Of a stretch of 64,000 nt of DNA, positions 4,369-57,507 are shown in pieces. Location: the NCBI GenBank assembly GCA_002269645.1, contig NIVC01000586.1, forward strand, positions 210,490 through 274,489. Reading direction: 5' to 3'. The notes beneath the pieces were generated by a model. That model was not told the origin of the DNA. It worked only from the letters and a program-made list of their open reading frames with translations, and did no database searches. Each line of letters starts with the position of its first letter. Within the stretch, counting starts at the first letter, position 1. A program made the position numbers and the translations under genes. The DNA is from Macrostomum lignano. Lineage: Eukaryota.

Positions 4369-7300
4369 ATGGCCTGCGACCTGCTAATGCCATCATCGCA
4401 AGGCGGAGCCAACAATCCAGCCTTCTCGCCGCTGACCCTGTTCGAGTGCACCATCACCAACGCACAGATGCTCATCGACTCCATGGCCGACCGGGACCTG
4501 ATGCAGGCCCTGAAGATCGCCGGCGGCCTCCACACCCACATTGTCGGCGTCATCGAGCCGCGCTACGATCGCGTCTGTCAGCGTAGCGACGAGCACGAAG
4601 CCTGCTGCCAGGCGGCTGCCGCGGCTGCAACATCAGCAACGCTGACTCCTTCCAAGTCAGCTGGCGCCGCCAACTCGGCCAGTTTCGGAGCCAATGGCAG
4701 CGGCGCCGATTTGAAATCTGCCGTAGCTGCCGCCGCCGCCGCGGCCGGCCTGAAGTCCGAGTCTACCGGCTCTGTGGCAGCTGGCGGCGTCAAGTCCGAG
4801 CTGCTGGACCCTGACGCGTTCCCCGAGGAAGACGAAGAGGACTGTCTGATCCTGGAGGAGGACTGCTCCTTCCCCGCCGCTGCTGCCGCAATGTCGCCGT
4901 CGGCCTCCAGCTCCGCCAGCCGAAAGCGCCACCGCCCGTTGTCGCCCTCGTCAAGTCTGCAGATGCCGGGCGGAGCCAGCGCGGGTTTTCCTGGCAGCGC
5001 CCAGCAACTGGCCGAGTGCAAAAATGCGCTCAGGATGGCCTATAAAAATATTAAAGGCAACGGGCCGCACCTGTTTGACTTTGCGCTGTCGTGAGTTGCT
5101 CTGCAATTCTTGCATCCCTTGTAGAGGGATTCGGTGGGGTATGCGCGGGTGAGGGATTCAGTGGGGTATGAGCGGGTGAGGGATTCAGTGGGGTATGAGC
5201 GGGTGAGGGATTCAGTGGGGTATGAGCGGGTGAGGGATTCAGTGGGGTATGAGCGGGTGAGGGATTCAGTGGGGTATGAGCGTGTGAGGGATTCAGTGGG
5301 GTATGAGCGTGTGAGGGATTCAGTGGGGTATGAGCGGGTGAGGGATTCAGTGGGGTATGAGCGTGTGAGGGATTCGGTGGGGTATGAGCGTGTGAGGGAT
5401 TCAGTGGGGTATGAGCAGCACAGTGAGGGATTCAGTGGGGTATGAGCGGGTGAGGGATTCAGTGGGGTATGAGCGGGTGAGGGATTCAGTGGGGTATGAG
5501 CGTGTGAGGGATTCAGTGGGGTATGAGCGTGTGAGGGATTCAGTGGGGTATGAGCGTGTGAGGGATTCAGTGGGGTATGAGCGTGTGAGGGATTCAGTGG
5601 GGTATGAGCGTGTGAGGGATTCAGTGGGGTATGAGCGTGTGAGGGATTCAGTGGGGTATGAGCGGGTGAGGGATTCAGTGGGGTATGAGCGTGTGAGGGA
5701 TTCAGTGGGGTATGAGCGTGTGAGGGATTCAGTGGGGTATGAGCGTGTGAGGGATTCAGTGGGGTATGAGCGGGTGAGGGATTCAGTGGGGTTGGGTATG
5801 AGCGGGTGAAGGATTCAGTGGCGTATAAGCGTGTGAGGGATTCAGTGGGGTATGAGCGTGTGAGGGATTCAGTGGGGTATGAGCGTGTGAGGGATTCAGT
5901 GGGGTATGAGTGTGTGAGGGATTCAGTGGGGTATGAGCGTGTGAGGGATTCAGTGGGGTATGAGCGTGTGAGGGATTCAGTGGGGTATGAGCGGGTGAAG
6001 GATTCAGTGGCGTATAAGCGGGTGAGGGATTCAGTGGGGTATGAGCGGGTGAGGGATTCGGTGGGGTATGAGCGGGTGAGGAATTCGGTGGGGTATGAGC
6101 GGCACAGTGAGGGATCCATTGGGGTCTGAGCAGCACAATGAGGGATTCAGTGGGATATGAGCAGCACAGTGAAGGATTCAGTGGGATATGAGCAGCACAG
6201 TGAGGGATTCAGTGGGGTATGAGCAGCACAATGAGGGATTCAGTGGGGTATGAGCAACACAGTGAGGGATTCAGGGGTCTGAGCAGCACAGTGAGGGATT
6301 CAGTGGGGTATGAGCAGCACAGTGAGGAATTCAGTGGGGTATGAGCAGCACAGTGAGGGATTCAGTGGGGTATGAGCAGCACAGTGAGGGATTCAGTGGG
6401 GTATAAGCAGCACAGTGAGGGATTCAGTGGGGTATGAGCAGCACAGTGAGGGATTCAGTGGGGTATGAGCAGCACAGTGAGGGATTCAGTGGGGTGGTGA
6501 GGCAGTGCAAGAACCCAACCAATCGCATTACATTTCATTACAATTTCACCAACCAATCGCAACGCCGCCGCAGCTTCCACGACCCGTCCAATCAGAGAGT
6601 ATCCGAGCAGATTATCGCTACGGCCCGCCAGCAGCTGAGCCACCTGCGCCTGCCTAACGATGTCTGGTGGAGTGAGTTGGTTATTTAATAATTTAAACAA
6701 ATGCATAAGTGACTACTCGCAACCAGTTAAAGTAATAGCATTAGCAAATGTATTAAGTGAATATTGATGTCGGCCCTCTCCTTGCATTTGGTGACTTCGC
6801 ACCGTGATCCAGTTTGATTGCCAGCTACAATAAGAGTTTTCATATCTTACCTGAGTATGGCTAGTAGCTAGTTTGTTTCCCATGGGACGGCAGCGCAACT
6901 GTCCCGTCATTAATTGATTCCGCCTCTATGAATTCATAATTAACTAATTATCTATGCTCTTCTTAACTGTTAGCAGTACAGTATGCATTTCAGTTTGTTG
7001 ATTTTGCTTCCCACTACCTGAGGTGCAGGTTTTATTGGTTATTTAAACCGACTGCAGGGTCGCGTGCTGATTATTGATACAAGCTGTGCAATTAGTTGTA
7101 CTTTTATTGCTGATCAGCTGCGTGCTGCCGTTCAACTGAAACTTTGTTTAGGCCAAGCCGGCAACCTGTGTAAGCGAATCAAAATCGAGCTGAACAATAA
7201 CAAGCGGCGCAATCGGCAGTTTCGCTGCAGGCAGAAGGTTGTTCTCCAACTGATTATTCTATTGGCTACCTAGCTAGCGAATCCCTACCAGCTGCAATGC

Positions 7301-10300
7301 TGAGCAGCCAGCCTCCCACATCCCCTAATGAGCCAGCCTCCCACATCCTTAATGAGCCAGTCTACCTCACCCCCTAATGAGCAGCCATCCTCCCACATCC
7401 CTAATGAACCAGTCTCCCTCACCCCCTAATAAGCAGCCAGCCTACCATATCCCCTAATGAGCCAGCCTCCCACATCCCTTAATGAGCAGCCAGCCTCCAA
7501 CACCCCATAATGAGCAGCCAGCCTCCCACACTCCCTAATGATCCAGCCTCCCACATCCCTTAATGAGCAGCCAGCCTCCCACACTCCATAATGAGCCAGC
7601 CTCCCACACCCCCTAATGAGCAGCCAGCCTCCCACACCCCCTAATGAGCAGCCAGCCTCCCACACCCCCTAATGAGCAGTCAGCCTCCCACACCCCCTAA
7701 TGAGCAGCTAGCCTCCCACACTCCATAATGAGCCAGCCTCCCACACCCCCTAATGAGCAGCCAGCCTCCCACATCCCTAATGAGCAGCCATTGAGTCTTG
7801 TCTTCTTAGCTTAGTTTATTGTGGCAGTGATAACAATCGGGAAAAGTTCTCAATGCCCTTATGAAGTGAAGCGGATCAAACTGCGGTGAAGCGGTGAAGT
7901 CTCGGGCAGTTGCTTGCTCAGCTCCGACAGTCATACCGCAGAGCCAATCAAATGCGTTTTTTAGAATCGCTCAACAGCAGCGGCGTGTTCGGTCAGGCGA
8001 GGCACAATTACTTAGCCAAATTTCGAATGCTTAAAATTAAACGGAAAAGCAACGTAGGTTTATTTGAGACTGTGTTCTCACTGAGCTGCGTGTGTCTGCA
8101 AACTCTGTTAGGTCATGGTTATAACTAGGGGGACAGGCAAATAAACTGACTTGCTGTGCCAGCGCTGTTAACCTGTAACCAAGTGTTAACCCGTAAACAG
8201 AGAAAGGCATGCCACTCGCCTTGCAGACAATAAAGCTGCTCGAGCATTTTATGCCGAGGAGAAAAATCGCGTGCTCACTCGAGTCCGAATGCGCCGCGTT
8301 GCCGGGCAGAAGTCTGTAAGGAGTCGCATCTGCCTTCCCTTCCCATCTTGTTTTTCTGAGTTGCAGTTTTGTCGCTTCTAATAGTTGCTTAATCAGCTGT
8401 TGCCACGGGCGTCTGGAGTTCCCGCTGGACTGGACTGGGGCGAGCATGGGGGGGGTAGTCAAATTGGGTATATATTCAAAAGGTGTTCATGACGACGCTC
8501 AAAGATCCCAGTGTCCAGTCCAGATAAGCTCCAGTGGTCCCTGGCCCATTCACCCATTGTTCATCCTGTTAATCGTTGTTATACGCTTTTATAAAAATTC
8601 GTAGCGATTCGGTGGCAAAGAGTTGGCCCATATCGACTAGAGTGCAGCTAGGCAGTATCTATGCAATAATAGCACACTGGATTGGACCGCTTACTGACCT
8701 TATTGCAGAGCACTGCTTCCCCAGCGTGTACGATGAGTTAACCAAATATGACAAGCATAGGGAGCGAATGAAGCACAGAATGCGAGCTCGCAGGCTTATG
8801 AACAGCGTACGTATTATAAATAGCTATAACTATTTGGCAGTGCAAGCCTGCTTGTTTCATAAATCACTGCCTAATCACGCATCAAACGCAAGGTCCGCGG
8901 CTAACACTTCCCATGGTTTCTTAGCGCAATCTTAATCCTCTTTGGGGTTGGGGATTTCTTTTTAAACTGTTTCAGGCCTGTCCAGTGCTGCGTTTGCTGA
9001 TCTGCAGCACAGCATATTGGAGAAGCGGCACTATACTAAGCATTCTGTGCGGAAATTCCGCAGCAAACTCAAGGTAAACACTGCCCTGGTCCGGATTGGG
9101 TCTTTGATATTAGCTTTTGCTTCTGCAGTCCAGTGTGTTCACCGTGTGTTCCGTGTTTGTTCTGGGCTATTAAAAGAGCAAGCTTTAATAGCCAAGATCT
9201 GGTCTGACAGTCGAATCCCACTGTCAAGTCCCAATCCCATAGTCAGAAGTCCCAATCCCGCAGTCAGAAGTCCCAATCCCATAGTCAGAAGTCCCAATCC
9301 CACAGTCAAAAGTCCCAATCTCACAGTGGGAAGTCACAATCTCACAGTCAGAAGTCACAATCTCACAGTCGTAAGTCACAATCCCACAGTCAAAAGTGAC
9401 AATCCCACTGTCAGAAGTCTCAATCTCGCAGTCAGAAATCCCAATCCCGCACTCAGAAGTCCCAATCCCACAGTCAAAAGTCCCAATCTCACAGTGGGAA
9501 GTCACAATCTCACAGTCAGAAGTCACAATCCCACAGTCGTAAGTCACAATCCCACAGTCAAAAGTAACAATCCCACTGTCAGAAGTCTCAATCTCGCAGT
9601 CAGAAATCCCAATCCCGCACTCAGAAGTCCCAATCCCACAGTCAGAAGTCACAATCTCACAGTCGTAAGTCACAATCCCACAGTCAGAAGTCCCAATCTC
9701 ACAGTGGGAAGTCCCAATCCCACAGTCAGAAGTCCCAATCTCACAGTCAGAAGTCCTAATCCCGCAGTTAGAAGTCCCAATCCCACATTCAAATCCCAAG
9801 CCCATAGTCAGAAGTCACAATCACACAGTCAGAAGTCACAATCACACAGTAGGAAATCACAATCCCGCAGTCAGAAGTCCCAATCACACAGTCGGAAATC
9901 ACAATCCCGCAGTCAAAAGTCCTAGCCCTGCTAATTTCAAATTAATCTCTACTGACTAATCCCTATTAAATTTATTCTGATAAATTGATAGGTTGCATGC
10001 CTGTTGGAGGTGCATAGCAACCCGGTAACGATGGTAACAAATTTCACGCAGCATCAAAAGCAAGGCCCGGCCGCCCCAGTTTAGCCAGCTCCGTTAGAGA
10101 TTGAATCCAGTGTTTCAGGACCGCCCGGCAGTAACACCTGCGCCGTGCGCTGCATTGCAGGCTGCGCTGAGGAATTGTGGCTGCTATTGAAGAAAGCTGT
10201 GGCGCACAAGCGCGAAAGAGACGTCTTCTATCAGCGCAAGGGGCGCCTGAAAAATAAAGTAAAACCATGCAGTCTATGCTCATTTGCTTACTTTTTCCAC

Positions 10301-11114
10301 CGGGTTTTATCCTTTGTTGTGAATTAACCAATTGGGTCGGTAAGACGCATATAGGCTTTTAGGAAGTAAGTGCTAATCAGGGACTTTTCTGCTCTCATTT
10401 ATACGACTGACATGATGCCTCATCTTTAAAATTGATTGGGCTGCGTGATATTACACCTCGCTGCCTCCCGATTTCCATCTCCCATTTCCAACCTCCATCT
10501 CCCCCTCCCAGCCTCCCTCTCTACCCCCTCCCAGCCTCTCTCTCTACCCCCTCCCAACCTCCCTCTATCTCCCGCTCCCAACCTCCATCTCTACCCCCCT
10601 CCGAACCTCCCTCTCCATCTCCTCTTTTCAATCTACCTTCATCTCCCCCTCCCGACCTCCCTCTCCATCTCCCTCTCCCGACCTACCTCTCCGTGTCCCA
10701 CACGCCACATACAGCTCCTGTTTTCTGACCCATCAGAAACTGGCCAGACGGCAGAAGAGCTTCGAACTGCTAGCAACCAGTTTATCCACCGACAAGTTCG
10801 ACAAGTACCGCATCATTTTGTCCCGGGACTACACTTCGTCTGACGAGGAAGCCGATGTTGGCAGCGGCGGTGCCAGCGCGAGCGGCGATGACGGAGGAGG
10901 CGGCGGAGGCGTCCTTCGAGTCCGCGAGCTGCCCTGGGAATCTGCGGAGCTGCGCGAGATGAAGCAGCAGCTGGACTCGATCTATCTGGAGAATTGCGCA
11001 ACTCAGAAGCAGGCGCAGCAGTTGCGCAGCACAGTGCGCGACTCCGGCTGCGTCAGCGGCAGGACTCCACCTGCCAACTGCCCGTCCTGGGCGCTGTCTA
11101 ATGAGTACCGCTAA
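4369..11114 (+). CDS. Paralog 1 of an uncharacterised gene with a mutually exclusive exon cluster; 427-431 aa per isoform
   Basis: Exon 1 is 4369-5090 (donor GTGAGT, phase 2). Exon 2 is 6574-6671 (98 nt, CAG acceptor, GTGAGT donor, phase 1). One of six cassettes follows (7152-10258). The last exon is 10737-11114 (phase 0, KLARRQKSFELLATSL...SRDYTSSDEE...WESAELREMKQQLD...PSWAL). Flanking splice positions match paralog 2 and the joined frame is open. Confidence 0.85.
5120..6497. repeat. 27-bp minisatellite (GAGCGGGTGAGGGATTCAGTGGGGTAT) in intron 1 of paralog 1
   Basis: About 50 near-identical tandem units; explains the YERVRDSVG-type ORFs. Confidence 0.95.
6884..6906 (+). promoter_or_regulatory. 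Candidate splicing docking site for the paralog 1 cassette cluster
   Basis: GGGACGGCAGCGCAACTGTCCCG lies 212 nt after the exon-2 donor, a similar distance to the paralog 2 dock. It is complementary to 7122-7133 (12 bp) and 7903-7913 (11 bp with a bulge); other matches are short. Confidence 0.4.
7152..7237 (+). CDS. Paralog 1 cassette exon 1 (86 nt): (S)QAGNLCKRIKIELNNNKRRNRQFRCRQK
   Basis: TTTAG acceptor, weak GTTGTT donor, phase 1 to 0, open frame, basic. Confidence 0.6.
7305..7790. repeat. Minisatellite, about 25-30 bp (TAATGAGCAGCCAGCCTCCCACACCCCC)
   Basis: Tandem degenerate units between cassettes 1 and 2. Confidence 0.9.
7965..8053 (+). CDS. Paralog 1 cassette exon 2 (89 nt): (K)SLNSSGVFGQARHNYLAKFRMLKIKRKSN
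   Basis: TTTTTAG acceptor, GTAGGT donor, phase 1 to 0. Confidence 0.75.
8227..8315 (+). CDS. Paralog 1 cassette exon 3 (89 nt): (N)NKAARAFYAEEKNRVLTRVRMRRVAGQKS
   Basis: TTGCAG acceptor, GTAAGG donor, phase 1 to 0. Confidence 0.75.
8709..8806 (+). CDS. Paralog 1 cassette exon 4 (98 nt): (K)HCFPSVYDELTKYDKHRERMKHRMRARRLMNS
   Basis: TTGCAG acceptor, GTACGT donor, phase 1 to 0. Confidence 0.75.
8976..9073 (+). CDS. Paralog 1 cassette exon 5 (98 nt): (S)LSSAAFADLQHSILEKRHYTKHSVRKFRSKLK
   Basis: TTTCAG acceptor, GTAAAC donor, phase 1 to 0. Confidence 0.75.
9215..9925. repeat. 21-bp minisatellite (AGTCCCAATCCCACAGTCAGA)
   Basis: About 33 tandem units between cassettes 5 and 6; explains the SPNPTVR ORF. 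Confidence 0.92.
10161..10258 (+). CDS. Paralog 1 cassette exon 6 (98 nt): (S)CAEELWLLLKKAVAHKRERDVFYQRKGRLKNK
   Basis: TTGCAG acceptor, GTAAAA donor, phase 1 to 0. Confidence 0.75.
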
Positions 11115-11259
11115 TGCTTGCCAGACTGATTAGGTGGCGAGCTGGTTGATTCGCGAACTATAGGGTTACTCGCGCCGTTTACCCAACTAACTGACGAATT
11201 TAGGGCCAACCATTCTTTACTGCAATTGTTTCTGACACCCAGTTTTGTTCGTGTTCTCT

Positions 11260-11532
11260 TCCATCCATGGGATACCCGCCACACCTGGTCTCTCCCATCC
11301 ATGGGATACCGCCACACCTGGTCTCCCCCATCCATGGGATACCGCCACACCTGGTTTCCCCCAGCCATGGGGTACCCGGCACACCTGGTCTCTCCCATCC
11401 ATGGGGTACCCGCCACACCTGGTTTCCCCCAGCCATGGGGTACCCGGCACACCTGGTCTCTCCCATCCATGGGGTACCCGGCACACCTGGTCTCTCACAT
11501 CCATGGGGAACCCGGCACACCTGGTCTCTCAC
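11260..11532. repeat. About 33-bp minisatellite (CACACCTGGTCTCTCCCATCCATGGGGTACCCG)
   Basis: About 8 tandem units downstream of the paralog 1 stop. Confidence 0.9.
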
Positions 11533-12119
11533 ATCGAGTTCGTCATGCTGTCAATGTTGACTTTTCGAATCAAAATTTGAATAGCTCTCCAATGCTGGCA
11601 CAGAGGCTCCATGCGATTTCAATACCTGGGGAAAAGTATTTGCTGCATTTAAGCTTCAATATTTGCACTGCGAGTAGTTGCGCAATGCGTCTCTTATCTA
11701 TAATATTTTACTTGTTGCTGCTATCCCAGTCAGTAAATATTATTGCAATTAGCGAACTTTCATAAACCCCACATTGTCACATGTCTCTGTTCACTTGTTA
11801 ATCTGTAATAAGTTTGCCTGTATTCTGTTTTCATGTGTTTATTATTTTTTGCTGTTGTTTAACTGCCCCCAGTCATTTCCGCAGCTTTGCTTTTGCGTTA
11901 ACACACTGTCTCGTTCTGTACATGCTATAAAATACGATAATTACATAACAATATGATAATAATTAATTTATTTGCTAAAGAATTTTTCATTCTTTTTCAG
12001 TTGTTGCCGATTAATTATCGGAAAATGCAGTTGTATTACTGTTCTGAAGCTTTGCTCATGTAGTGAAATAGACCAGGCTTTATTATTATAGCATAGTGTA
12101 ATTCATAGTGCATGTTTAG

Positions 12120-12788
12120 TTCCTGGGATTCCCCTCCAGCACCCATCCCCCTGACTGCCTACCCCACAGCGTACATTGAATGTCTGGGATTCCCCTCCAG
12201 CACCCACCCCTCACTGCCTACCCCACTGCGTACATTGAGGGCCTGAGATTCCCCTCCAGCACCCACCCCTCACTGCCTACTCCACTGCGTACATTGAGTG
12301 TCTGAGATCCCCCTCAAGCACCCACCCCTCACTGCCTACCCCACTGCGTACATTGAATGTCTGGAATTCCTCTCCAGCACCCACCCCTCACTGCCTACCC
12401 CACTGCGTACATTTAATGTCTGGAATTCCTCTCCAGCACCCACCCCTCACTGCCTACCCCACTGCGTACATTGAATGTCTGGAATTCCTCTCCAGCACCC
12501 ACCCCTCACTGCCTACCCCACTGCGTACATTAAATGTCTGGAATTCCTCTCCAGCACCCACCCCTCACTGCCTACCCCACTGCGTACATTGAATGTCTGG
12601 AATTCCTCTCCAGCACCCACCCCTCACTGCCTACCCCACTGCGTACATTGAATGTCTGGAATTCCTCTCCAGCACCCACCCCTCACTGCCTACCCCACTG
12701 CGTACATTAAATGTCTGGAATTCCTCTCCAGCACCCACCCCTCACTGCCTAACCCACTGCGTACATTAAATGTCTGGGATTCCCTTCT
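12120..12788. repeat. 59-bp tandem repeat
   Basis: About 11 units of CTGGAATTCCTCTCCAGCACCCACCCCTCACTGCCTACCCCACTGCGTACATTGAATGT just upstream of paralog 2. Confidence 0.95.
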
Positions 12789-12846: not shown

Positions 12847-15800
12847 ATGACGGACATTCTGCCTAGCCACTCCATCACCGGGGGCGTTTTTTCACCCCTG
12901 ACCCTGTTCGAGTCCACCATCACCAACGCGCAGATGCTGGTGGAGTCCATGGCCGAGCGGGAGCTGTTCTCCGCCCTGCGCATCATCGGCGGCCTGCACA
13001 GCCACGTTGTCCAGGTCATGGAGCCGCGCTACGGCCGCCTGTGTGAGCGCAGCGACCACCTCGCCGAGCTGGAGGCTGCCGGCCTGGATCAAAGCCACGG
13101 CTCCGCTGCCGAGGCTGCCGAAGCCACTTCATCCTCGTCGGCTGCTGCCGCTTCTAGCAGACGCTTCGCTAAGGAGGAGAAACTGCTAGGCGACACCGAC
13201 ACGGAGCAGCAGTGCACCTCCGTGCTGCGCTCCGCCCTTGGCACCATCAAGGTATTTCCTATTCACCGCGTTGTGATGTCGGCGCCTTTCCTATTATATT
13301 TGATGTCGCGGACTTTCCCATCTCCTCTGATGTCGCCGACTTTCCCATCTCCTCTGATGTCGCCGACTTTCCCATCTCTGATGTCGCCGCCTTTCCCATC
13401 TTTTTTTATGTCGCCGCCTTTCCCCACTCCTTTGATGTCGCCGCCTTTCCCCACTCCTTTGATGTCGCCGCCTTTCCCGTCTCTTTGATGTCGCCGTCAT
13501 TCTCTTCTCTTCTCTTCTGGTGCTCAACAGATGGAGAACTTTGACGCGGCCGGCGCTTCCGCCCTGCCATCCGCCGCTAACGCAAACTTCGGCGAACAGC
13601 TGGAGCCGCCGGAGATCTTGGAAGAGGACGCCGATGATGAAGACGAGGATGACGATTGCGTCATCACCGACTACTTCGACGACAGCAGCTTTGGCGCTAG
13701 CGGCATCGGCGCCTTCGGTGGCGTCGGCCCGTCGCCCGCCAAAATGCCGCGACTCGGCGGGGTCGGCGGCGGCGCAGGCGACAGCTCGATGCCGGCCGAG
13801 TGCAAGACCATCATGCGCCGGGCTTACAAAGCTCTCAAGGGCAACGGGCCGCATCTGTTTGACTTCAGCCTGCCGTGAGTCTCCTTAGCTGGCACGCCGG
13901 TTACCAGTCCCGGCCTCAGTCTGGAAACGCCTCTAGAAATCTTCGACTTTACATCAGCCAAAATGCAAACCCTGGTTAGGCTACCCTGAACAAACCCTGA
14001 GCCACCCCTGAACAAACCCTGAGCCACCCCTGAACTCAAGTCTGAGCCATTCCCTGAACTCAACCCTGAGCCACCCCTTGAACTCAACCCTGAGCCACCC
14101 CCTGAACTTAACCCTGAGCCACCCCCTGAGCTCAATCCTGAGCCACCCCCTGAACTCAACTCTGAGCCACCCCCTGAACTCAACTCTGAGCCACCCCCTG
14201 AACTCAACTCTGAGCCACCCCCTGAACTCAAATCTGAGCCACCCCCTGAACTCAACTCTGAGCCACCCCCTGATCTCAACCCTGAGCCAGCCCCTGAACT
14301 CAACCCTGAGCCACCCTTGAACTCAACCCTGAGCCAGCCCTGATCTCTGTGGACTCAAGAGCGCCGCCTCCCCCACCGCCGGCCCCACAGCTTCTCTTCG
14401 GAGCACAACCAGCGAGTTGCCACCCGCGTCACCGCCAAAGCCAAGGAGATGGCCCAGGGCAAGGGCTGGCCCGAGGACATTTGGCTGAGTGAGAAACAGT
14501 GCCGCTTTTTGTGCATTTAGATATAAAGTTTGATAAGTTGATAAATGATGTGTAGAATACAACTCTTAATTAAGATTACACTGCGTATGAAGTAGTTAAT
14601 AGAATAGATTAATCGTAAAATCTTATCTTAGTTATATTCTATTAATACTACTCGCACAGACTAGCCAAGTAGTATCTATAGGCTGCGCTAATTTGCTAAT
14701 TTTACCTGCCCTCAAGTCTGGAAACGTCGCAAGTAATTTGGGTACAAGAAATATTTAATAACTAATTTTAATCTCCTTTCAACTTGGGCTGCTTCTAATA
14801 GGTTCATGTCTGACTATTTGAGACACAATCAGAGACTTAATTATGCATTAATTATCTAATTAATTATTTGCATTATTTCTATTGCCGAACTGCCTACAGT
14901 TAGCAGGTGGTAAAGCGATGTAATGCTACTGAGACTGTTGCCTATTCGACGTTTCTTATTGGCCATTTAGAATGAGTTTTGAATAAAGCTGAACTGCTCA
15001 ACTCACACTTAGAACTGCCCTACGGCTCAAGGCTAGTCTACCTGTACCTGGATTTTCGGCAAAAGATGAGGTTTAAGCATCGATGCGTTGTAAGCTTTGC
15101 TGGTCATCTCTGTTTCTATCGGTTTTTTGTGTCACACCAGCCTCCACTGTCCTGCTTGCGATGTTCGCCCAGACTCGCGTCTTTATAACAGGCTTTGCTC
15201 AAAACAGTTTTGCCAATATGTTTCTGGCCTCCAATTTGCCCAGGGCTGCCCAAAGAGTCCAGAGTAAATCGGATTCACTGCACCTATGGAGCCCGTCTGC
15301 GCGCCAAGCACAGGCAGATTGTGAGTTCCCTCCCCCTGTGCCCTCCCCTGTACCTTGATGAGCCGCCTCTCCCCCTGTGCCTTTGATGAGCCGCCTCTCC
15401 CCTTGTGCCTTTGATAAGCCGCCTCCCTCCCCCTGTGCCTTTGATAAGCCGCCTCCCTCCCCCTGAGCCTTTGATGAGCCGCCTCTCCCCATGTGCCTTT
15501 GATCAGCCGCCTCTGCCCCTGTGCCTTTGATGAGCGGCCTCCCTTCCCCTGAGCCTTTGATAAGCCGCCTCTCCCCTGAGCCTTTGATGAGCCGCCTCTC
15601 CCCTTGTGCCTTTGATAAGCCGCCTCCCTCCCCTGAGCCTTTGATAAGCCGCCTCTCCCCTTGTGCCTTTGATAAGCCGCCTCCCTCCCCCTGAGCCTTT
15701 GATGAGCCGCCTCTCCCCCATGTGCCTTTGATCAGCCGCCTCTGCCCCTGTGCCTTTGATGAGCGGCCTCCCTTCCCCTGAGCCTTTGATAAGCCGCCTC

Positions 15801-18800
15801 TCCCCTGAGCCTTTGATGAGCCGCCTCTCCCCTTGTGCCTTTGATAAGCCGCCTCCCTCCCCCTGTGCCTTTGATAAGCCGCCTCCCTCCCCCTGAGCCT
15901 TTGATGAGCCGCCTCTCCCCACGTGCCTTTGATCAGCCGCCTCTGCCCCTGTGCCTTTGATGAGCGGCCTCCCTTCCCCTGAGCCTTTGATAAGCCGCCT
16001 CTCCCCTGAGCCTTTGATGAACCGCCTCTCCCCTTGTGCCTTTGATAAGCCGCCTCCCTCCCCTGTGCCTTTGATAAGCCGCCTCCCTCCCCCTGAGCCT
16101 TTGATGAGCCGCCTCTCCCCCATGTGCCTTTGATCAGCCGCCTCTGCCCCTGTGCCTTTGATGAGCGGCCTCCCTTCCCCTGAGCCTTTGATAAGCCGCC
16201 TCTCCCCTGAGCCTTTGATGAGCCGCCTCTCCCCTTGTGCCTTTGATAAGCCGCCTCCCTCCCCCTGTGCCTTTGATAAGCCGCCTCTCCCCTTGTGCCT
16301 TTGATAAGCCGCCTCCCTCCCCCTGAGCCTTTGATAAGCCGCCTCTCCCCTTGTGCCTTTGATGAGCCGCCTCTCCCCTTGTGCCTTTGATAAGCCGCCT
16401 CCCTCCCCTGAGCCTTTGATAAGCCGCCTCTCCCCTTGTGCCTTTGATCAGCCGCCTCTCCCCCTGTGCCTTTGATAAGCCGCCTCCCTCCCCCCTGAGC
16501 CTTTGATGTCCGCCTGTCTTTGCGCTGGGTTAAGCAAGTCAGTGATAAATAAGTCTACAATTTTACAATCAATTCGACGTTTCCCGTCTGGACAGTTGGC
16601 TAAAAACTCTCGCCTATAAGTGCACCCAGAGTCTGAGGCGATTTTCCCGCAGGACTGCCGAAAGTCGGCCGCCTGTCCGAGATTTTCTTTGTTTTCAGAA
16701 GTCAAATCCGAAACAAGCTGCGACTCGTTGTACGCAATTGTCACAGTTCCGCACTTTCTCTGTTGTGTTGGGAATTTTTCTGTCAAAAATTTTCTACGAT
16801 GCATATCGGCGTTTCCTGACTAAAGTTGAGCAGATTTGGCTTTGCGTAGCAAATTTCTACCAAAGTCGCTATCGTCTACTCACGCCAGTCAGTAGTGTAT
16901 TGAGGAGTGCTCGGCTCACTTTTTACATCTATTTTTAGATCTGCCTTCCAGCGGCAAAATCAGGAAGATGTTCACCGATTTTAGGCAGAAGATGCGCGCT
17001 AGGCTGGTGCTTGGCGTGCGTGCCCGATTTTCTCTGTTTAGGTTTTTATTTAATTTTTTGACGTTTCCCGGCTGCCTGTAAGCTCACTGCTGTGTGAGGC
17101 TTGTGCTTGCTAACACTTGACCTGACTGCCCCGCTGTTGCAGGGCTGCCACACACCGGCCGGCCGACCGCCATATTCAACGATTTTAGAAAGAAAATGCG
17201 CACCAGGTTTCGAATGGATGTTAGTGATAATTGCTTTAGGTGTTTCTATGGGGCTCTGCGAATTCCGCTTCAGTGCTGAGACGTTTCCCGACAATGGCCG
17301 GGTGCTGCAATTGTGCGAACCCCCCTGTGTCCGTCACGCCACCGACTGCCGCTTGCAGATCTGCCGCCCAAGGCCCGCCTGCTCGCCATTTTTGGCGACT
17401 TTAAAAAGAAAAGGCGATTCAAGTCCCGCTCTGATGTCAGTGCAGCTGGGTGGCTTTTCGCCTCATCTGTGTTGTCTGTTTTCCCCCATTTTTGCTTGCA
17501 CTGCCTTGGCTGGGTAGGCAGGGTAGCTAGATTGGTAGACAGACAAATTGATTGATTGACAGACAGGCAGGCAGGCAAACAAACACTAAGATAGGCAAAC
17601 AGACAGACACAGATACGCTAGCAGACCAACGCAATTGCGCGGTGCACCGTGGGGGGGGGGTGAGGCTGTACATTGCTGGCACTGTTGGGCCAGCCGCCCT
17701 TACTCGCTGTAACTTATCGCTCAGCCTGTTACAATGCCAGACGCAATGCCAGACGTTTCCTGACAACTCAGACTGTGAATTGTACAGCACACAGAATTGC
17801 CAGCAAACAGTTCCCCATCGCGCGCGTTGCAGAGCTGCCCATGAACAGCCGATTGATCTGCATATTCGCCGACTTTAGAAAGAAGATGCGCAACAGATTT
17901 CGTTCAGATGTTGGTCCGGGTTCAAAACTCGATTTCAGAGCTTTCAGGCTGCGATATGAAAATATTTGTTACATGCTATTGGAACTACTGTACTGACTGC
18001 TGATCAGTAGTCAATGCCATCATGATGTGAAAAATGTTTTCCTCTCTGATTTGCTTCTGTTTAAACTGTACTGAGCTGTCGAAAAGCCACTGCATGACCT
18101 GAGCTATGACTGAAAAGCCACTGCATGACCTGATCTATGACTGAAAAGCCACTGCATGACCTGATCTATGACTGAAAAGCCACTGCATGACCTGATCTAT
18201 GACTGAAAAGCCACTGCATGAGATCTGAGCTATGACTGAAAAGCCACTGCATGAGATCTGAGCTATGACTGAAAAGCCACCACTCTATGACCTGAGCTAT
18301 GACTGAAAAGCCACCACTCTATGACCTGAGCTATGACTGAAAAGCCACCACTCTATGACATGAGCTGTGACTGAAAAGCCACCACTCTATGACCTGAGCT
18401 ATGACTGAAAAGCCACTGTATGAAGGCTATGACTGAAATGAATCTCAAAGCAGCCAGCTCTCGCAGTCTTGCCTCGCTTCCCCCGAACTTGCAGAAGCTG
18501 AACCGCCGTCAGAAAAGTTTCGAACTCGTGGCCACCAGCCTGACCTCTGACGAGCTGGAGAAGTTCCGCGTGATCCTCACCAGGGAGTACACCAGCTCGG
18601 ATGAGGAGTGCGGCTCCGGCGGCGCCGACCAGCTGCGGGTCCGCGAGCTGTCCTGGGAGTCCGACGAGGTGAAGCGGCTGAAGCGGCAGCTGGACCAGGT
18701 GTACGCGGACAACTGCGCCACCACCAAGCAGAAGCAGCAGCTGGCCAGGTGCATCCGCGACCCCGTCCGATCGCGGTCGCAGCGGCCGCCGCCCGAGGCT

Positions 18801-18884: not shown

Positions 18885-19789
18885 CCGCCTTCGCGAGTTA
18901 CTCCTGCTTGACCTGACTTCATCTGCCCTTCTCCGTTATCCGCTCCCATACGCCCTTACCCTCCGTTATTCGCCCGTCCATTCGCCCTTACCCTCCGTTA
19001 TCCGCCCCCTCATCCGCCCTTACCCTCCGTTATTCGCCCCTCCAGCCGCCCTTATTTTCCGTTATCCGCCACCTCATCCGCCCTTTCTCTACGTTATCCG
19101 CCCCCACCCGCCCTTACCCTCCGTTATCCGCCCCCTCATCCGCCCTTACCCTCCGTTATTCGCCCCCTCATCCGCCCTTACCCTCCGTTATTCGCCCCTC
19201 CAGCCGCCCTTTCTCTTTATCCGCCCCCTTTCTTGCCCTTGCTCTCACAGTCCCTGTTATCCGCCCCGCCTCCGCTCAGTCGCAGTTCGCAAGCGCGGAC
19301 CAGTATTCGAACCCGGGGCAACGAGTTATTGAACTGTTATTAAAAGCCGCTCTGTGCCCTCCTGTTTGCGCGTCTGCAATCCCCTGTGCCGCTGTTCAAT
19401 GTACATTGACTTGTGTTTTATTGAATATTTTCTGTTCGTGGCAGACTTTGCATTTTTATTTTTGTAAACTATTTGAGTATCAATATATTTGCTTTGTCAA
19501 TCACCCATCAATTAGCATGGACTGTTTTATTTTTCATTAATATACACCCGCGTTTAATCACAATGTCCAGGCTCTGTTGAACTGCAATTGAATGTCTTTA
19601 ACCAGGCAAATACAGAACCGCCAACGCATTAACAACTGCTTATTCAATTATCAATTGCTGTTGCGAAATGATCGAATTCTTATCGATAAATATCTTGATA
19701 AGCTGGCTGCTTTATTTTGAAAATAGATTTTTGCAATTGCATTATCAAAAATATCAGTTTAGTTTGTGGACCCTGAAATAATTGGGAAT

Positions 19790-23461: not shown

Positions 23462-24499
23462 TGCTGAAAATTGGCTGGTAGAGGCGACGGGCCAGCAGCA
23501 TGGAACTGAAGTTTTTCTTGCAGCGAGCCGCAGAATTTAATCGATGCTCAAACCGCACTACTGTCTTAAGTAGAGTAGCCAGCTTCCTCTTAAAAAAATT
23601 TTCTTCTATAAAACAAAAATCCGGTATGTATCGAAAAGATAGTAAGCCTGTCTTTTCAAAAAATGCTTAAATTTTTTACCGCTATTTCTGTGCAGTCCAT
23701 TTTCTGAAATCTGAAATAAAGCCCAACTATATCAGATATTTACAGTGCTCTGTGTACTTTAAGTGTTCTTTGGCTATCAACGTTGCAAAAATAAAGCTTA
23801 TCCAGAGCTATTATTTACTAAAAATGTTAATCTTTTATAAAATAAATACGCAGCTTTTCAGATTTTATAGTTAAAAAGGCACACAGACAGACAGAAAAAC
23901 AGTCAGTCAGAAAGAGAGACACTGGGACATTAAAAGACTGGGGGCATTAAGAGACTGGAGCATCAAGACACAGAGACATTAAGACACTGAGACATTTAAG
24001 ACACTGATACATTTAGACACTAGGAAATTTAAGACAATGAGACATTTAAGACAATGGGACATTAATTAGACACTGGGACATTAAGACACTGGGACATTAA
24101 GACACTGGGACATTAAGACACTGGGAAATAAGGACACTAAGACATAAAGAAACTGGGACATTTAAGACAATGGAACATTTATTAAAAACTGGGACATTTA
24201 AGACACTGGGACATTTAAGACAATGGGACATTAATTAGACACTGGGACATTTAGGACAATGGAACATTAATTAAAAACTGGGACATTTATGACAATGGGA
24301 CTTTAGCGACTCGCAAAATGAAATGGCGCGAGAGAAAGTAAACTTTTATTTTTCACAATCGCATATAAATACTGCGCGACAGAGAGGCATGGGGAGGTGC
24401 GCATAGTCCGTGCCAGACCCTGCGGCTTAGCGCGCCGGCCGTCTGGGTGCACCCACCCCCCGGGCAGGGTGAGTCAGGCCGATTGAGTGCAGGTGCACT

Positions 24500-25290
24500 G
24501 CCGGCCAGGCGGGCCGAGAAGTCCTGGATGTGCGGCACTGGGTAGCGGTCGGGCACCGTGGCGTCGTTGAGCCGCCTGAAGTCGCCGCAGGGCCGCCACC
24601 CGCCCGAGGCCTTGGGCACCATGTGCAGCGGCGAGGACCACGGGCTGTTGGACCGGCGCGCGATGCCGAGCTGCTCCAGGAGCCGGAACTCCTCCTTGGC
24701 CACCGCCAGCTTGTCCGGCGGCAGGCGGCGAGGGCGGGCGTGGACCGGCGGGCCCTGAGTCGGGATGTGGTGCTCGACCCCGTGGCGCGGCTCCGCTCGC
24801 TGGAAGCTGGGCTCGGTGAGGGCGGGGAACTCGGCCAGCAGCTGGCTGTACGGGTCCGCAGCGGCGGCTGCGGCGAGCTGCAGTCCGGGCCCCGTGCCGT
24901 CCAGCAGGTGCACGCTGGCGAATGAGCGGGCGTCCAGGAGTCGCCGGTGCGGCAGATCCACCAGCAAGCCGTGGTGTCGCAGGAAGTCGGCGCCGATCAG
25001 CGGGCGGGAGACCTCGGCCAGGATGAACGGCCACGAGCAGCGCCGGATTCCGAGGTCGAGCGTGAGCTGGCGGGTGCCGAAGGTGCGAATGAGGCTGCCG
25101 TTGGCTGCAAAGAGCGGCGGGCCGGGCGTGTGCAGGCGAGCATCCGAGCCATCGACGGGGAAAATGCTGACCTCGGCGCCGGTGTCGACCAGGAAGCGCC
25201 GGCCCGTCTGCACATCGGGGATGAGGAGCAGGCTGCTGCTGTTGCCGGCCGCCGAGCTGTTCACTGACGGCCGGCCTGCCCGTTTCCCTG
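24500..25290 (-). pseudogene. pol: Truncated pol (aspartic protease plus N-terminal part of reverse transcriptase)
   Basis: [10 protein letters not shown] protease motif; RT motifs [12 protein letters not shown] and CGDFRRLN...DRYPVP. It ends at DFSARLAG, fused to the LTR, with no YxDD, RNase H or integrase. Confidence 0.9.
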
Positions 25291-25959
25291 GAAGCTGCAT
25301 GGAGATTCGCAGCGGCGTGCCTTGGCTCCGAAACGGCGATGGAAGTAGCACAGGCCGTCGTCAGGGTGATGTTGTTGCTGCTTAGACGGCCGACTGCCGC
25401 CCCGACGGGTCGCCGAAACCACCGGCTGGGTGGGCTCCGCTGCCGGCTGCTGGACGGAGGCCGCGGCGAGCTGCGGCCGGCTGGCCCACAGCTTGTCGGC
25501 GAGCTGCGCTGCTTCCCGCGGGTCGCTGAAGTCGGCGGTCGCCATTGCCATTCTGACCTCAGCGGGCAGCTGCTGGCGGAACAACTCTTCGAAGAGCAGG
25601 CAGGGCCGGTGGTCGCCAAGCAGGGCGAGCATCTCGTCCATCAACTCCGTGGGACGCCTGTCGCCGAGGCCGGACATGTTGAGCAGGCGGCTGGCCCGCT
25701 GTTGTCGGGACAGCTCGAAGGTGCCGAGCAGTCGCTCCTTCAGCCTCTTGTACTTTTCTTCCCTCGGCGGATTCTCCAGCGCGTCGATGAGCCGCTCGGC
25801 GGTCTGCTGATCGAGCGCCGCGATGACGTGGCTGTACTTCGTGTCGTCATCGGAGATCTTCCGCAGAGCGAATTGAGCTTCGGCCTGAACAAACCAAATA
25901 CGAGGTTGAGATGCCCAAAACGTGGGCAGTTTGAGTGCAACGGCTGACTCCGTAGTCAT
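25261..25959 (-). CDS. gag: Retrotransposon Gag, 232 aa
   Basis: ALKLPTFW...[10 protein letters not shown]-terminus and a C-terminal Cx2Hx9Cx3C knuckle ([18 protein letters not shown]). Slippery heptamer G GGA AAC at 25282-25288, with pol in the -1 frame. Confidence 0.9.
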
Positions 25960-53660: not shown

Positions 53661-56600
53661 TTAAAGACCACTAAATTCGTTCATAATGTCCAAAGCCTTG
53701 TCATCCGACAACTCCATCAGTTCATATTCACTTCGGTGAGGTCGGTGCAAAGAAAGTCTTTTTTGCGGCGGACAACTGGCGAGCTGTGAGCCAGGTCTCT
53801 TCGGCTGTGTGTGTGAAGCGGAGCCAACTGGCGAACTTGTGTTGGCTAGCATCACTGAAGCCGTCGGAGAGGCAGACGCCGCGACAGCCATCAAGCAATT
53901 AGCAGCCGGCGAATTCGTCTTGCTTAGCAGACGCAGGCGGCTGATGGATGAACTTCCGACATTTGAACTGGAAGCAGTCGCAGATGCAGAGGGACCGTCA
54001 GTTGGATTGTCGGACTGCCGTCAATGGGACTTCTTTGACAATCAGTCAACGCCTCGATGCAGAATCTTGCGGCAGGCATTGCTCACGAAAAGCAGTGTCA
54101 AAGTGCCTGCCTCCATCGAGACGCCGTAAATGCTCGTGGCAACATCTGAGTGATTTTTATGTGAAAGAATAACTTGAACAAGTTGTTGCTACTGCTAATA
54201 GTAGACTATTTCGGTTAGGATTTCCTACACGTCAAACTTTGGCGAAATTCAGTATTTTTTAATATTGTTCATTCAATAAATCCTAGCTGAGTACCTGATT
54301 TAATTACACTAAATAAAACTATTTTGAAGAAATTCAATAACAAAAGTAACAGAATTCGGGCCGCTTCTTACCTTGAACATGTTGCAGCATAACGAACTTG
54401 AACCCAAGGGCTGAGTCGGACAGCTCAGTCAGCACGCCAGCCTCCCTGCACTTAGCCCGCAGGCCTTGTCCGCTGAAATTGACTGCAGCCTGCATCTCCG
54501 CAGTCGCATCGTATCGTATCGTATCTGCGGCAGTCCTCATTTTTCGGCTCGGCAGCACTTTTTTCTGTTGGTTTTGAGTGGTTGATTTCTGATGAAGTAC
54601 GAAACGGAATTAAAATTTATTACTTTATAAGTAATGTACTCACCAACTCTAACGTCCACTCTGCAGGCGCATTCTGAGCGTACTGAACATATGCTTCCCA
54701 TGAAGCGATGGGCCAGAACTTTATTTCCTCTTCTGTTGGCTGCTGGCCCCGGGTTATAGTCAGCCGCAGCAGCTGCAGCTCTTCTTTGACAGTGGACAGC
54801 TCGGCTAAACATCGGTTCTGCCGGGCTTCCATCTGTTGGAACTTCAGGGCAGTCTCGCGAAGGACTGACAGAGCAACAAACAAGATGCCGCGATTGCTTT
54901 CCAGTGGAAAATCTAGTAGGGACTGAATTTGCTGTTCAAGGCCTTTGACGGCCTTACCAGAGAAGCGCCCAAAGTTCACTGGCGCCGCCGCAGCCGTGCC
55001 ATCTTGAGCTGCCGCTGCTGCTTCCGCTTCCGCTGCCATTTCCGCTTCCACTTCTGCTGCTGCTTTCGCTACTGCTGCTTCTTCTTCTTCTTCTTCAGGG
55101 CTCGTCTGGGTCGGGGTTAGCCGAAATGGACGGGGGCATGCGCCCCATGCTACGCAGGAGGCCGAAAAGGGCGGTTGGGGACTCCAACAAGTCCTCGGCC
55201 GCGCGGATGCCGTGCAGGGCGCGGTAGCGGTCCCCGCGAGGGCAGGCGAGCAGGATGTGCCTGACTGTGTCGAGTTCGCCGCAGTCAGGGCAGTTGGCTG
55301 TCTCGGTGAGGCCCATCTGATGGAGTGAGCTGTTGTTGATGGTGCTGGCTCCGGCTCGCAGCTGATTGAGGAGGACTTGGCGCTGCCGGGTCATGGTGGC
55401 GGGTGGCTGCTTAAAGGCGCCCACGACCGCAAGATCGAGGGACCTGCGGCTGCGCCGGGCGGCGGCTTTGGCGGTGCTGAGTGGAAGCTCGACGTGGCGT
55501 TGGTCTAGTTGGGCGGCACGGGAAGCCGCCTGATCCGCCGCCTCGTTGCCGGCGATTCCGCAATGTGCGGGGACCCAGGCGAAGGAGGGGGGCGACCGTC
55601 GGCCTTCAGGCTCATGATCGAGTCCCAGCAAGCTGCTGCAGTCGGATCGGTCTGGTCGATGGGACCGGCGAGCAGGGCGGTGAGGGTGCTGAGGCTGTCG
55701 GTGGCGATCCAGTGCGGCTCGGCAGCGCGGTCAGCTTGCAGGTATTTGAGCGCCTCGTGGATGGCAACGAGTTCGGCGGTGTAACTGCTGCAGAGGGCGC
55801 CTGCGGCGGCCGGAAGTTCGACATTGTTGTTCTCGTTGCGCACAATGATAGCGGCCCCGCCACCATTCTTTTAGCCTTCCGTTACGGAACCGTCGGTCCA
55901 GATTGTGTTGGACTCGCAGAGAGTCGCGATGATGTCAGTCGCGTGGTGGGCTCTGATGTCTGGCGGCATGTCGCGGTGGGTCCTGAGGCTGGCTCGAAGG
56001 TCGAAGATGATGTCGCTGGCGCCGGTGGTTCTCCAGGGCTCAACGCCGAGAGGCGGCAGGGCGCGTGGGAACTGGTCCAGGGCGGCGGCGCACTCAAGCT
56101 CGAAGGCGGCGCGGCGCCAGCAGCCACGGTGCGGGCGAAGGGCGTCTTTCTGGCATCCAGGTTGGTTGACGGCGGGCGTGGCATCCGGGCTGTTGCGGGT
56201 TTGGCGCTGCAGGGCTTCGTAACTGCGGTTCTTGAGGTGTGGTCGTGTGACACATTCGGTAGTTTCGCGGCTACTGCTGCTGCTGCAGCCGCTGCAATGG
56301 CTGCCGCCTTAGCTGCCGCCAATTTTGCGAGCGCTGCTCCTGCTACTGATGCATTGTTAGCAGGTTTCGGGATGGTGGATGCAGCTGGTGATGTTGCAGC
56401 AGCTGGCAGTGGACAAAGTTTTGCTACCGTCTCAGGCATAGCTTGGTCAGGTAGCTGCAACGGAAGCAACTGTACGGCTGCTTCTTTCCGACCATTGAAG
56501 AAGTGATCCATGTCGAAAGCGGAACCGAAGGACATGTCCTGTTAATTTAGATAAAATTAGAGAATAAAGTGCACTAGCTTTTCAGTCTGCAGACTGCAAC

Positions 56601-57173: not shown

Positions 57174-57507
57174 GAGGCAAATTTTGAAAAAATCTGATTA
57201 TGGAAATATAAAATTTTAAACGCCTATTTGCGACTCAGTGAACAACATGAAAATCAAAGCTTACTATTTGGTGGTGGAGTGGGACTGAAAATATATTTTG
57301 CTAGGGGAGAATTGGGAAGCGAATTCTTCTGCCCTCTCATTGGTCGGTTGTGAATATTCCGCAACCAATGCCAATGAATAATTCTTGAGAGTTAGCTTGA
57401 CCGTTAGATAGTTGTAGTTGATTTATAGTTGATTGCTTGATTGCATTTTTACTAAAGCCATAATTTACTTTCACTTAATTTATCATTCGATTTTGGCCAC
57501 ATCATTG
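57174..57507. promoter_or_regulatory. Putative bidirectional promoter between the accessory gene and the transposase
   Basis: 334 bp between divergent ATGs, with CCAAT/ATTGG boxes near 57340-57375. Confidence 0.4.

Follow-up and report, generated by a model that had tools for sequence, protein, structure and literature searches.

Six probably mutually exclusive exons clustered in a gene of the flatworm Macrostomum lignano, with putative docking and selector elements in its gene family

The analyzed DNA is a 64,000-nt stretch of contig NIVC01000586.1 (locus L001, hereafter the window) from the genome of Macrostomum lignano, a free-living flatworm. Our subject is the region 7152-10258, which lies in BOX15_Mlig028241g1 (gene 1) and contains six short exon-like segments, c1 to c6; a tandem paralog, gene 2, follows downstream. 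A sequence-only reading of the window had described six alternative exons here, and the coordinates, lengths (86/89/89/98/98/98 nt), phases and borders that it gave were verified for all six, as was their placement between a 98-nt exon (6574-6671) and the last exon at 10737. Three protein models are cited repeatedly, namely P0001 (PAA80363.1; also PAA80386, from a second locus), P0168 (PAA55553.1), and P0169 (UniRef A0A1I8H8D8). Three genome copies of the locus (L001, L002, and L006), 1-1.7% apart in non-repeat intron, were compared, together with the paralog-bearing loci L003, L004, and L007. The elements of gene 1 are as follows.

4369..5090, + strand: exon 1, from ATG to donor GTC/gtgagt, ending in phase 2; equals residues 1-241 of P0001 and P0168
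6574..6671, + strand: exon 2, constitutive, 98 nt (...LPNDVWW), ending in phase 1; present in models P0001, P0168, P0169, and P0170
7152..7237, + strand: cassette c1, 86 nt, (S)QAGNLCKRIKIELNNNKRRNRQFRCRQK; used in PAA80363/PAA80386; ortholog e1 (86 nt, first in its cluster) in L003
7965..8053, + strand: cassette c2, 89 nt, (K)SLNSSGVFGQARHNYLAKFRMLKIKRKSN; weak similarity to cassette f2 of L007
8227..8315, + strand: cassette c3, 89 nt, (N)NKAARAFYAEEKNRVLTRVRMRRVAGQKS; invariant in the three genome copies
8709..8806, + strand: cassette c4, 98 nt, (K)HCFPSVYDELTKYDKHRERMKHRMRARRLMNS; one Val/Leu difference among the three copies
8976..9073, + strand: cassette c5, 98 nt, (S)LSSAAFADLQHSILEKRHYTKHSVRKFRSKLK; used in A0A1I8H8D8; reciprocal best hit e2 of L003
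10161..10258, + strand: cassette c6, 98 nt, (S)CAEELWLLLKKAVAHKRERDVFYQRKGRLKNK; spliced exon 2-c6-last exon in PAA55553.1; counterpart e3 of L003
10737..11114, + strand: last exon (KLARRQKSFE... to stop), starting in phase 0; identical to the C-terminus of P0168

Public gene models place different cassettes at the same slot. The open reading frame (ORF) at 4369-5090, the exon 6574-6671, and c1 are together identical to PAA80363.1, in which exon 1, exon 2, and c1 are followed by read-through past the weak c1 donor into the intron, with a stop after 11 codons. P0169 consists of exon 1, exon 2, and c5 and ends there, and P0168 (431 aa, from the third genome copy) is full-length and corresponds exactly to exon 1-exon 2-c6-last exon. 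Three models of gene 1 hence each carry a different single cassette directly after exon 2, in support of the proposed alternative use of one slot: c1 in PAA80363/PAA80386, c5 in A0A1I8H8D8, and c6 in PAA55553.1. Read-through is also seen at the exon-2 donor, in P0170, and after the used cassette of a paralog in P0171 (two loci), which resembles P0001 in this respect. When the six cassettes were concatenated and searched against the protein database, P0001 alone was returned; the c5 and c6 isoforms sat inside its 90% cluster. The GenBank models were derived from genome-guided RNA-seq assembly with StringTie/TACO and a de novo transcriptome; TransDecoder supplied the ORF calls, and the TACO setting --isoform-frac 0.75 meant that dominant isoforms alone were retained in the GenBank annotation (PMC5730564). 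Since their GenBank models are RNA-seq-derived, c1 and c6 have transcript support.

Regarding the annotation itself, two deposited models are truncated by read-through: that of gene 1 after c1 (4369-7273, PAA80363/PAA80386) and that of gene 2, PAA80364 (12820-14520), after its 98-nt exon. Because both are truncated in this way, the public annotation lacks the C-terminal domain and all cassettes but one.

All six cassettes have a pyrimidine-rich tract with an AG acceptor, a GT donor, a length of 2 mod 3, a phase 1 to phase 0 transition, an uninterrupted frame, and a basic C-terminal end. Their donors are, in order, AAG/gttgtt, AAC/gtaggt, TCT/gtaagg, AGC/gtacgt, AAG/gtaaac, and AAA/gtaaaa, five of the six near consensus and c1 being the exception. 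Any one cassette alone yields a complete, uninterrupted coding sequence of 428-432 codons. The other possible products were enumerated: skipping every cassette shifts the frame and brings a stop after 35 further codons, and stop codons occur in all 15 pairs, all 20 triples, and all 15 quadruples. Among products with zero to four cassettes, an intact reading frame comes from single inclusion alone. The sequence-only reading had worried that four cassettes included together would also restore the frame; in overall length they do, but none of the 15 quadruples is stop-free, which removes the worry.

That exactly one cassette enters each mRNA is supported by the gene models, in which c1, c5, and c6 occur singly, and by this frame logic; the use of c2, c3, and c4 is what we infer from their sequence features. 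The estimate of at least 13 variants from the two genes is better taken as an upper figure than a minimum, because c2, c3, and c4 have no transcript model or clear ortholog. Two other mechanisms of exclusivity were ruled out, namely steric hindrance, given inter-cassette introns of 169-1,087 nt, and U2/U12 incompatibility, given that all sites are GT-AG with U2-like donors.

The slot was scanned for further members with a filter that accepted AG..GT segments of 77-101 nt, 2 mod 3 in length and open in the frame of exon 2, with at least 10 pyrimidines in the 20 upstream nucleotides and at least five Lys/Arg in the last 14 residues. The 4.07-kb slot returned exactly c1-c6 and nothing else, and a looser scan of it gave no convincing seventh cassette. 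Applied to both strands of the window with the two cassette slots excluded (~112 kb), the same filter matched six times (~0.05/kb), so that ~0.2 matches would be expected in the slot by chance versus the six found, a comparison that serves as illustration rather than as a P value, as the filter was devised post hoc. The arrangement was also compared with the description of mutually exclusive exon clusters by Pillmann, Hatje, and Kollmar (PMC3923563): the six are neighboring exons in one intron, between constitutive exons ending at 6671 and starting at 10737, and they have similar lengths, a shared reading frame, and a conserved splice-site pattern.

Sequence similarity among the cassettes is low. 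The mean pairwise amino acid identity of c1-c6 is 22% (range, 10-37%) versus 39% (19-62%) for the seven gene 2 cassettes, in agreement with the claim that the gene 1 set is far more divergent. As a set, c1-c6 scored above shuffled peptides (z = 4.0; 0 of 300 shuffles), largely owing to the shared basic tail. Homology judged by sequence is weak within the set and has its further basis in the matches c1/e1, c5/e2, and c6/e3 to L003. Given the 22% identity and the lack of a profile match to the corresponding exon of other animals (see below), we argue homology of the six from position and phase. Across the three-way alignment of genome copies, 2 of 558 cassette nucleotides were variable versus 35 of 2,073 in unique intron (Fisher one-sided P = 0.008); one of the two cassette variants is synonymous (c2) and the other a Val/Leu exchange (c4). 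The two constitutive exons had 5 variable sites in 477 nt.

The encoded protein belongs to a family with many Macrostomum paralogs, and 513 relatives reached E ≤ 0.001 in a profile search. Ten distant matches that were looked up include amphioxus, sea star, acorn worm, brachiopod (Lingula), and bivalve proteins, every named one being "uncharacterized" or "hypothetical"; a mixed-alignment homologue search returned Branchiostoma "uncharacterized" proteins alone. Pfam gave no family for the isoforms, for the cassettes in context, or for the distant homologues, and neither a PDB sequence search nor a Foldseek search of the AlphaFold model against PDB (model pTM, 0.38) found a relative. That c1 looks somewhat like the basic region of a bZIP protein was considered and found unsupported. 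In nine homologues from outside Macrostomum, the equivalent of the exon is 37 ungapped residues with the consensus xAxKxYFxSxxDxxxRxxxGxxExHxxxxRRxxRxxx.

An AlphaFold structure model was obtained for the paralog P0002 from an eight-sequence family alignment and is confident for residues ~224-348 alone (pLDDT, 83-95). As to a shared secondary structure, the cassette of this paralog (286-318) falls within a helix at 281-333 (pLDDT, ~85-92), of which it makes up the first two-thirds, with the helix continuing into constant KLARRQKSFELL. All cassettes end Lys/Arg-rich and abut a constant basic motif (KLARRQK). From this basic tail beside KLARRQK one might speculate that the variable helix offers a nucleic acid-binding, nuclear-targeting, or partner-binding surface. 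Some family members bear UniProt names such as "Rab-GAP TBC," "FATC," "Copine," "Exo70," "Sec8," and "Ras-GEF domain-containing" (including A0A1I8I2Z3, A0A1I8H8D8, A0A1I8HSW4, and A0A1I8H78*, WormBase ParaSite models); these names look spurious, because the precomputed Pfam field is empty for the entries retrieved in the search and scans of a gene 1 isoform, P0002, and P0009 were domain-free.

Several cassettes were present at the slot in every Macrostomum paralog examined, listed here with gene 2, the last exon of which starts at 18495.

14391..14488, + strand: gene 2, homologous constitutive 98-nt exon
15013-15089, 15244-15320, 16653-16729, 16939-17015, 17143-17219, 17359-17435, and 17833-17909, + strand: gene 2, seven cassettes of 77 nt each
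L003, gene 1-like (P0002, 47% identical to gene 1): three cassettes, the first also 86 nt
L007, 12915-13202, gene 1-like (P0173): two cassettes
L004, 7808-10144 (P0009): at least five cassettes
L003, 25657-28447, gene 2-like: at least ten cassettes of 77 nt
L007, 19799-21414, gene 2-like: at least three cassettes (locus incomplete)

Alternative use recurs in these paralogs: model P0010 uses one gene 2 cassette and P0011 another, and P0009 and P0014 use different cassettes. Between gene 1 and L003 the matches are colinear, with c1/e1 and c5/e2 as reciprocal best hits and c6/e3 weaker. For gene 2 and L003, the reciprocal best hits are d1/h6, d2/h7, and d3/h10; cassettes d4-d7 and h1-h3 have their closest match inside their own gene. 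When the slot was compared with L003 at the nucleotide level, the constitutive exons alone could be aligned. In the Lingula homologue (Lingula anatina, L009, LFEI02000595.1, 5759-8689), a single 110-nt exon, 2 mod 3 and with the same phases, occupies the slot directly before the conserved "KL.RR," and no extra exon copies were found in its flanking introns. Because Lingula keeps both this boundary and the phases, the intron positions around the helix are ancient.

The proposal that the slot is older than the gene duplication is thus supported by the single exon of Lingula, the clusters in all paralogs examined, and the colinear counterparts of c1, c5, and c6. The comparison further places clusters of several cassettes before the duplication by which these genomic regions became separate. 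Because their length classes differ (86-98 nt in gene 1 versus 77 nt in gene 2), this claim does not extend to the tandem duplication of gene 1 and gene 2. Cassettes appear to have been born and lost since the duplication of the regions.

In gene 2, a putative docking site and selectors were identified.

14718..14734, + strand: putative docking site, CTGGAAACGTCGCAAGT, 230 nt past the donor of the constitutive exon; complementary to an element before each of the seven cassettes
~14948, 15158, 16576, 16808, 17060, 17280, and 17752, + strand: putative selectors, one per cassette

The selector, (G)ACGTTTCC(C/T)G, occurs once, 65-131 nt upstream, at each of the seven cassettes (7/7), and the 8-mer ACGTTTC[CT] has five occurrences on the + strand of the window, all at these selectors. 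A shared-motif search found an exact copy in 5 of the 7 gene 2 flanks and, with one mismatch allowed, a copy in 6 of 7, where shuffles gave 2-4. Predicted duplex energies range from -16 to -28 kcal/mol (z = -4.0 to -8.2), and the selectors would use overlapping docking nucleotides. The docking 17-mer is conserved, being identical in three paralogous gene 2-like loci and forming the sole stretch of at least 12 nt (six overlapping 12-mers) common to their slot introns. Selector variants, as reverse complements of the docking site, accompany all ten gene 2-like cassettes of L003 and two of the three of L007, and orthologous cassettes keep one variant, with CTTGCGATGTT in both d2 and h7. A docking model for gene 2 is well supported by these predicted pairings.

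For gene 1, the comparable elements are candidates.

6780..6793, + strand: candidate docking site (D1), CCTTGCATTTGGTG, located 109 nt 3' of the exon-2 donor; identical in three genome copies
7051..7060, + strand: selector-like element before c1, ACTGCAGGGT, 92-101 nt before the acceptor; duplex z = -3.3; fold -15.2 kcal/mol, z = -2.9
8880..8893, + strand: selector-like element before c5, CATCAAACGCAAGG, 83-96 nt before the acceptor; two mismatches to the D1 complement
10052..10065, + strand: selector-like element before c6, CATCAAAAGCAAGG, 96-109 nt before the acceptor; -16.8 kcal/mol, z = -2.5; identical in three copies

D1 was found through paralog comparison alone. A 15-mer, CTTGCATTTGGTGAC (6781-6795), is common to the introns of the window and of L003 (11590), at donor offsets of 109 and 101 nt, respectively; by our own arithmetic, ~2e-4 such 15-mers would be shared by chance between two 480-nt introns. 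Throughout the window, on both strands, complements of D1 with two or fewer mismatches occur at 8880-8893 and 10052-10065 alone. The c5 element is predicted to form a 13-bp helix with D1 (-14.6 kcal/mol, z = -3.0), the core of which is unchanged in the three copies. By sequence, the elements before c5 and c6 would occupy one and the same 14-nt stretch of D1, with overlap by the element before c1, so that the pairings would be mutually exclusive. In L003, three cassettes have complements 63-114 nt upstream (combined z, -3.4). At c2, c3, and c4 of gene 1, there were matches of 6-9 nt at chance level or none, so that a selector does not stand beside every cassette. The first docking searches in gene 1, by inverted repeats, sliding 24-nt windows, exact and G-U k-mers, and shared motif, were not above null, and a GC-rich segment (6884-6910) tried as a docking region was not significant. 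Docking in gene 1 is consequently proposed as a candidate model. A 21-bp minisatellite between c5 and c6 (34 units, 9214-9922) is 82-88% complementary over 16-17 nt to 6791-6807, directly 3' of D1; this pairing could represent a decoy, a balancer, or chance.

We consider it likely that BOX15_Mlig028241g1, like its near-identical copies, carries in this region a cluster of six exons that are used in a mutually exclusive manner. The cluster would have arisen by tandem duplication of one ancestral exon (2 mod 3, phase 1 to 0) that, going by the structure model of the paralog, accounts for the greater part of a long basic alpha-helix; the protein is conserved among animals but uncharacterized. Each mRNA would join exon 2 to one cassette and to the last exon (10737), giving up to six proteins that differ solely in ~30 residues of the helix. 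The reading frame acts as a filter, in that products with zero, two, three, or four cassettes all reach a stop and would encode truncated protein or, presumably, be removed by nonsense-mediated decay (NMD). In addition, there is probably competition among RNA elements, located in the introns upstream of the cassettes, for a single docking site shortly after exon 2 (candidate, 6780-6793), in the layout of Dscam exon 6, which is clear in gene 2 and detectable in gene 1 for c1, c5, and c6 alone.

A number of observations weigh against the six-exon cluster and its docking. The 22% identity within the set is low, and the c1-c6 profile, when aligned by hhalign to the corresponding exon from nine other animals, did not match it (probability, 0.5%). 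The constraint across genome copies is a weak test because these differ by only 1-1.7%, although its outcome is in the expected direction. No transcript model, L003 ortholog, or clear selector was found for c2, c3, or c4; the c5 model comes from WormBase ParaSite/UniProt, apart from the transcript-derived GenBank models; and c1 is seen solely in models that read through its weak donor (AAG/gttgtt) into the intron. For docking, the D1 motif is absent from the third gene 1-like paralog, L007, no motif is common to all six upstream or downstream flanks of gene 1, and the statistics over all six cassettes are marginal (combined z, ~-2).

In a rival reading, c1, c5, and c6 are the sole working alternative exons and c2-c4 are silent or decaying pseudo-exons, open by chance. 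Its main argument is that the former are the same three that have gene models, colinear counterparts in L003, and a D1 complement, and c2-c4 have none of these. Yet c2-c4, although as diverged as old duplicates, keep their borders, 2 mod 3 length, open frame, and basic tail; their donors (gtaggt, gtaagg, gtacgt) are of good consensus; and across the three copies their 276 nt differ at no more than two sites, one change being synonymous and the other conservative. Missing models are, moreover, expected for minor isoforms, because the annotation kept dominant isoforms under the TACO setting (--isoform-frac 0.75) given above. We therefore hold this restricted version to be unlikely, though it is the most serious competitor of the six-exon cluster.

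Much less probable is that the cassettes serve mainly as alternative ends, without further splicing, to give truncated proteins that lack the conserved C-terminal domain. P0001 (two loci), which continues past c1 for 11 intronic codons before its stop, and the likewise truncated P0171 (two loci) of a paralog would fit such a function, but P0168 and P0002 are full-length with a cassette spliced to the last exon, every cassette meets its GT donor in exactly the phase (0) that the last exon needs, and the read-through forms resemble retained introns or incompletely processed pre-mRNA captured by a short-read assembler. That the six are chance open stretches in an intron, which the short length of each segment might suggest, has a negligible probability in view of six matches versus ~0.2 expected, three segments in gene models, and three with paralog counterparts.

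Elsewhere in the window, minisatellites (periods of 21-201 nt, up to 49 copies) occupy almost every intron and the intergenic spacer, and they account for most gaps between the three genome copies, as compared in the gene 1 region; transposable-element remnants are also present, and Rfam had no match anywhere in the window.

5124-6495, 7301-7790, 9214-9922, 10474-10699, 11255-11535, and 12123-12783: minisatellite arrays
13274-13496, 13984-14347, 15345-16515, 18081-18438, and 18919-19245: further minisatellite arrays
24353-25959 (- strand), 55095-55631 (- strand), and 57433-59455 (+ strand): transposable-element remnants

One DUF7041-containing ORF (Pfam E = 2.5e-23) adjoins a further long ORF without a Pfam match, and a weak RNase H fragment scored 23.1 bits, under the Pfam cutoff of 25.8. 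Two adjoining long ORFs without a Pfam match may be another element.

To our knowledge, mutually exclusive exon arrays of more than three members are rare. The docking/selector mechanism is documented mainly in insects and in a few mammalian genes. The closest likeness is to Dscam1 exon 6 of insects, where tandem exons of the same phase and similar length lie in one intron and one is used per mRNA. There, the constitutive exon is followed by a docking site, and every variable exon is preceded by a selector (PMC6071210); gene 2 has its putative docking site after the upstream constitutive exon and a selector 65-131 nt before every cassette, and for three cassettes of gene 1 there is a candidate arrangement of this type. 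The differences are that Dscam1 has 48 such exons versus 6-10 here, that they encode part of an immunoglobulin domain rather than a basic helix of a probably intracellular, uncharacterized protein, and that the pairing here is predicted from sequence. Gene family and phylum are unrelated, and an independent origin is thus probable. Unlike those of Dscam1, the Macrostomum exons are 2 mod 3, so the frame alone would remove multiple inclusion.

The medium-sized clusters of Drosophila MRP (8 exons), Mhc (5 and 3), TepII (5), and 14-3-3zeta (3) likewise arose by tandem exon duplication, with the exons of each cluster encoding one and the same structural element, and competing RNA structures have been reported for several of them (PMC6071210). 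In these, the docking site is downstream of the cluster (PMC6071210), whereas the putative site here lies upstream; here, too, sets of paralogous genes each have their own cluster, with cassette birth and loss. Frame-enforced exclusive exon pairs, in which double inclusion or skipping leads to a premature stop and NMD, are similar in that the cassettes are 2 mod 3 and stops follow from zero, two, three, or four of them, but six exons rather than two are involved, and NMD in M. lignano is something we infer. Few annotated Drosophila clusters beyond Dscam are of such size (MRP, 8; Mhc, 5; TepII, 5; PMC6071210), and arrays of 6, 7, and at least 10 are large next to annotated clusters outside Dscam. 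In the literature collection that we searched, there was no description of a mutually exclusive exon cluster or of docking/selector pairing for Macrostomum or other flatworms, which is no proof of absence, and no match to the gene identifiers. The device is of a known kind, found here in an unstudied, animal-wide gene family.

The signature of docking and selectors in gene 2 is unusually clean and is conserved between paralogs. M. lignano is tractable by transgenesis (PMC5730564), and the RNA-pairing model is thus testable outside arthropods. The results also correct the public annotation, in which these genes were deposited as truncated or single-isoform proteins, and they flag a conserved animal protein family without a Pfam model or solved structure, the most variable part of which appears to be under programmed diversification. 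We tentatively suggest that a flatworm gene family of at least six loci, with 2 to at least 10 cassettes each, diversifies one basic helix through Dscam-like docking/selector arrays that are independent of those in arthropods, old, and subject to cassette turnover. If true, such a family-wide diversified helix would suggest that selection has favored a range of binding specificities like that of recognition or defense systems.

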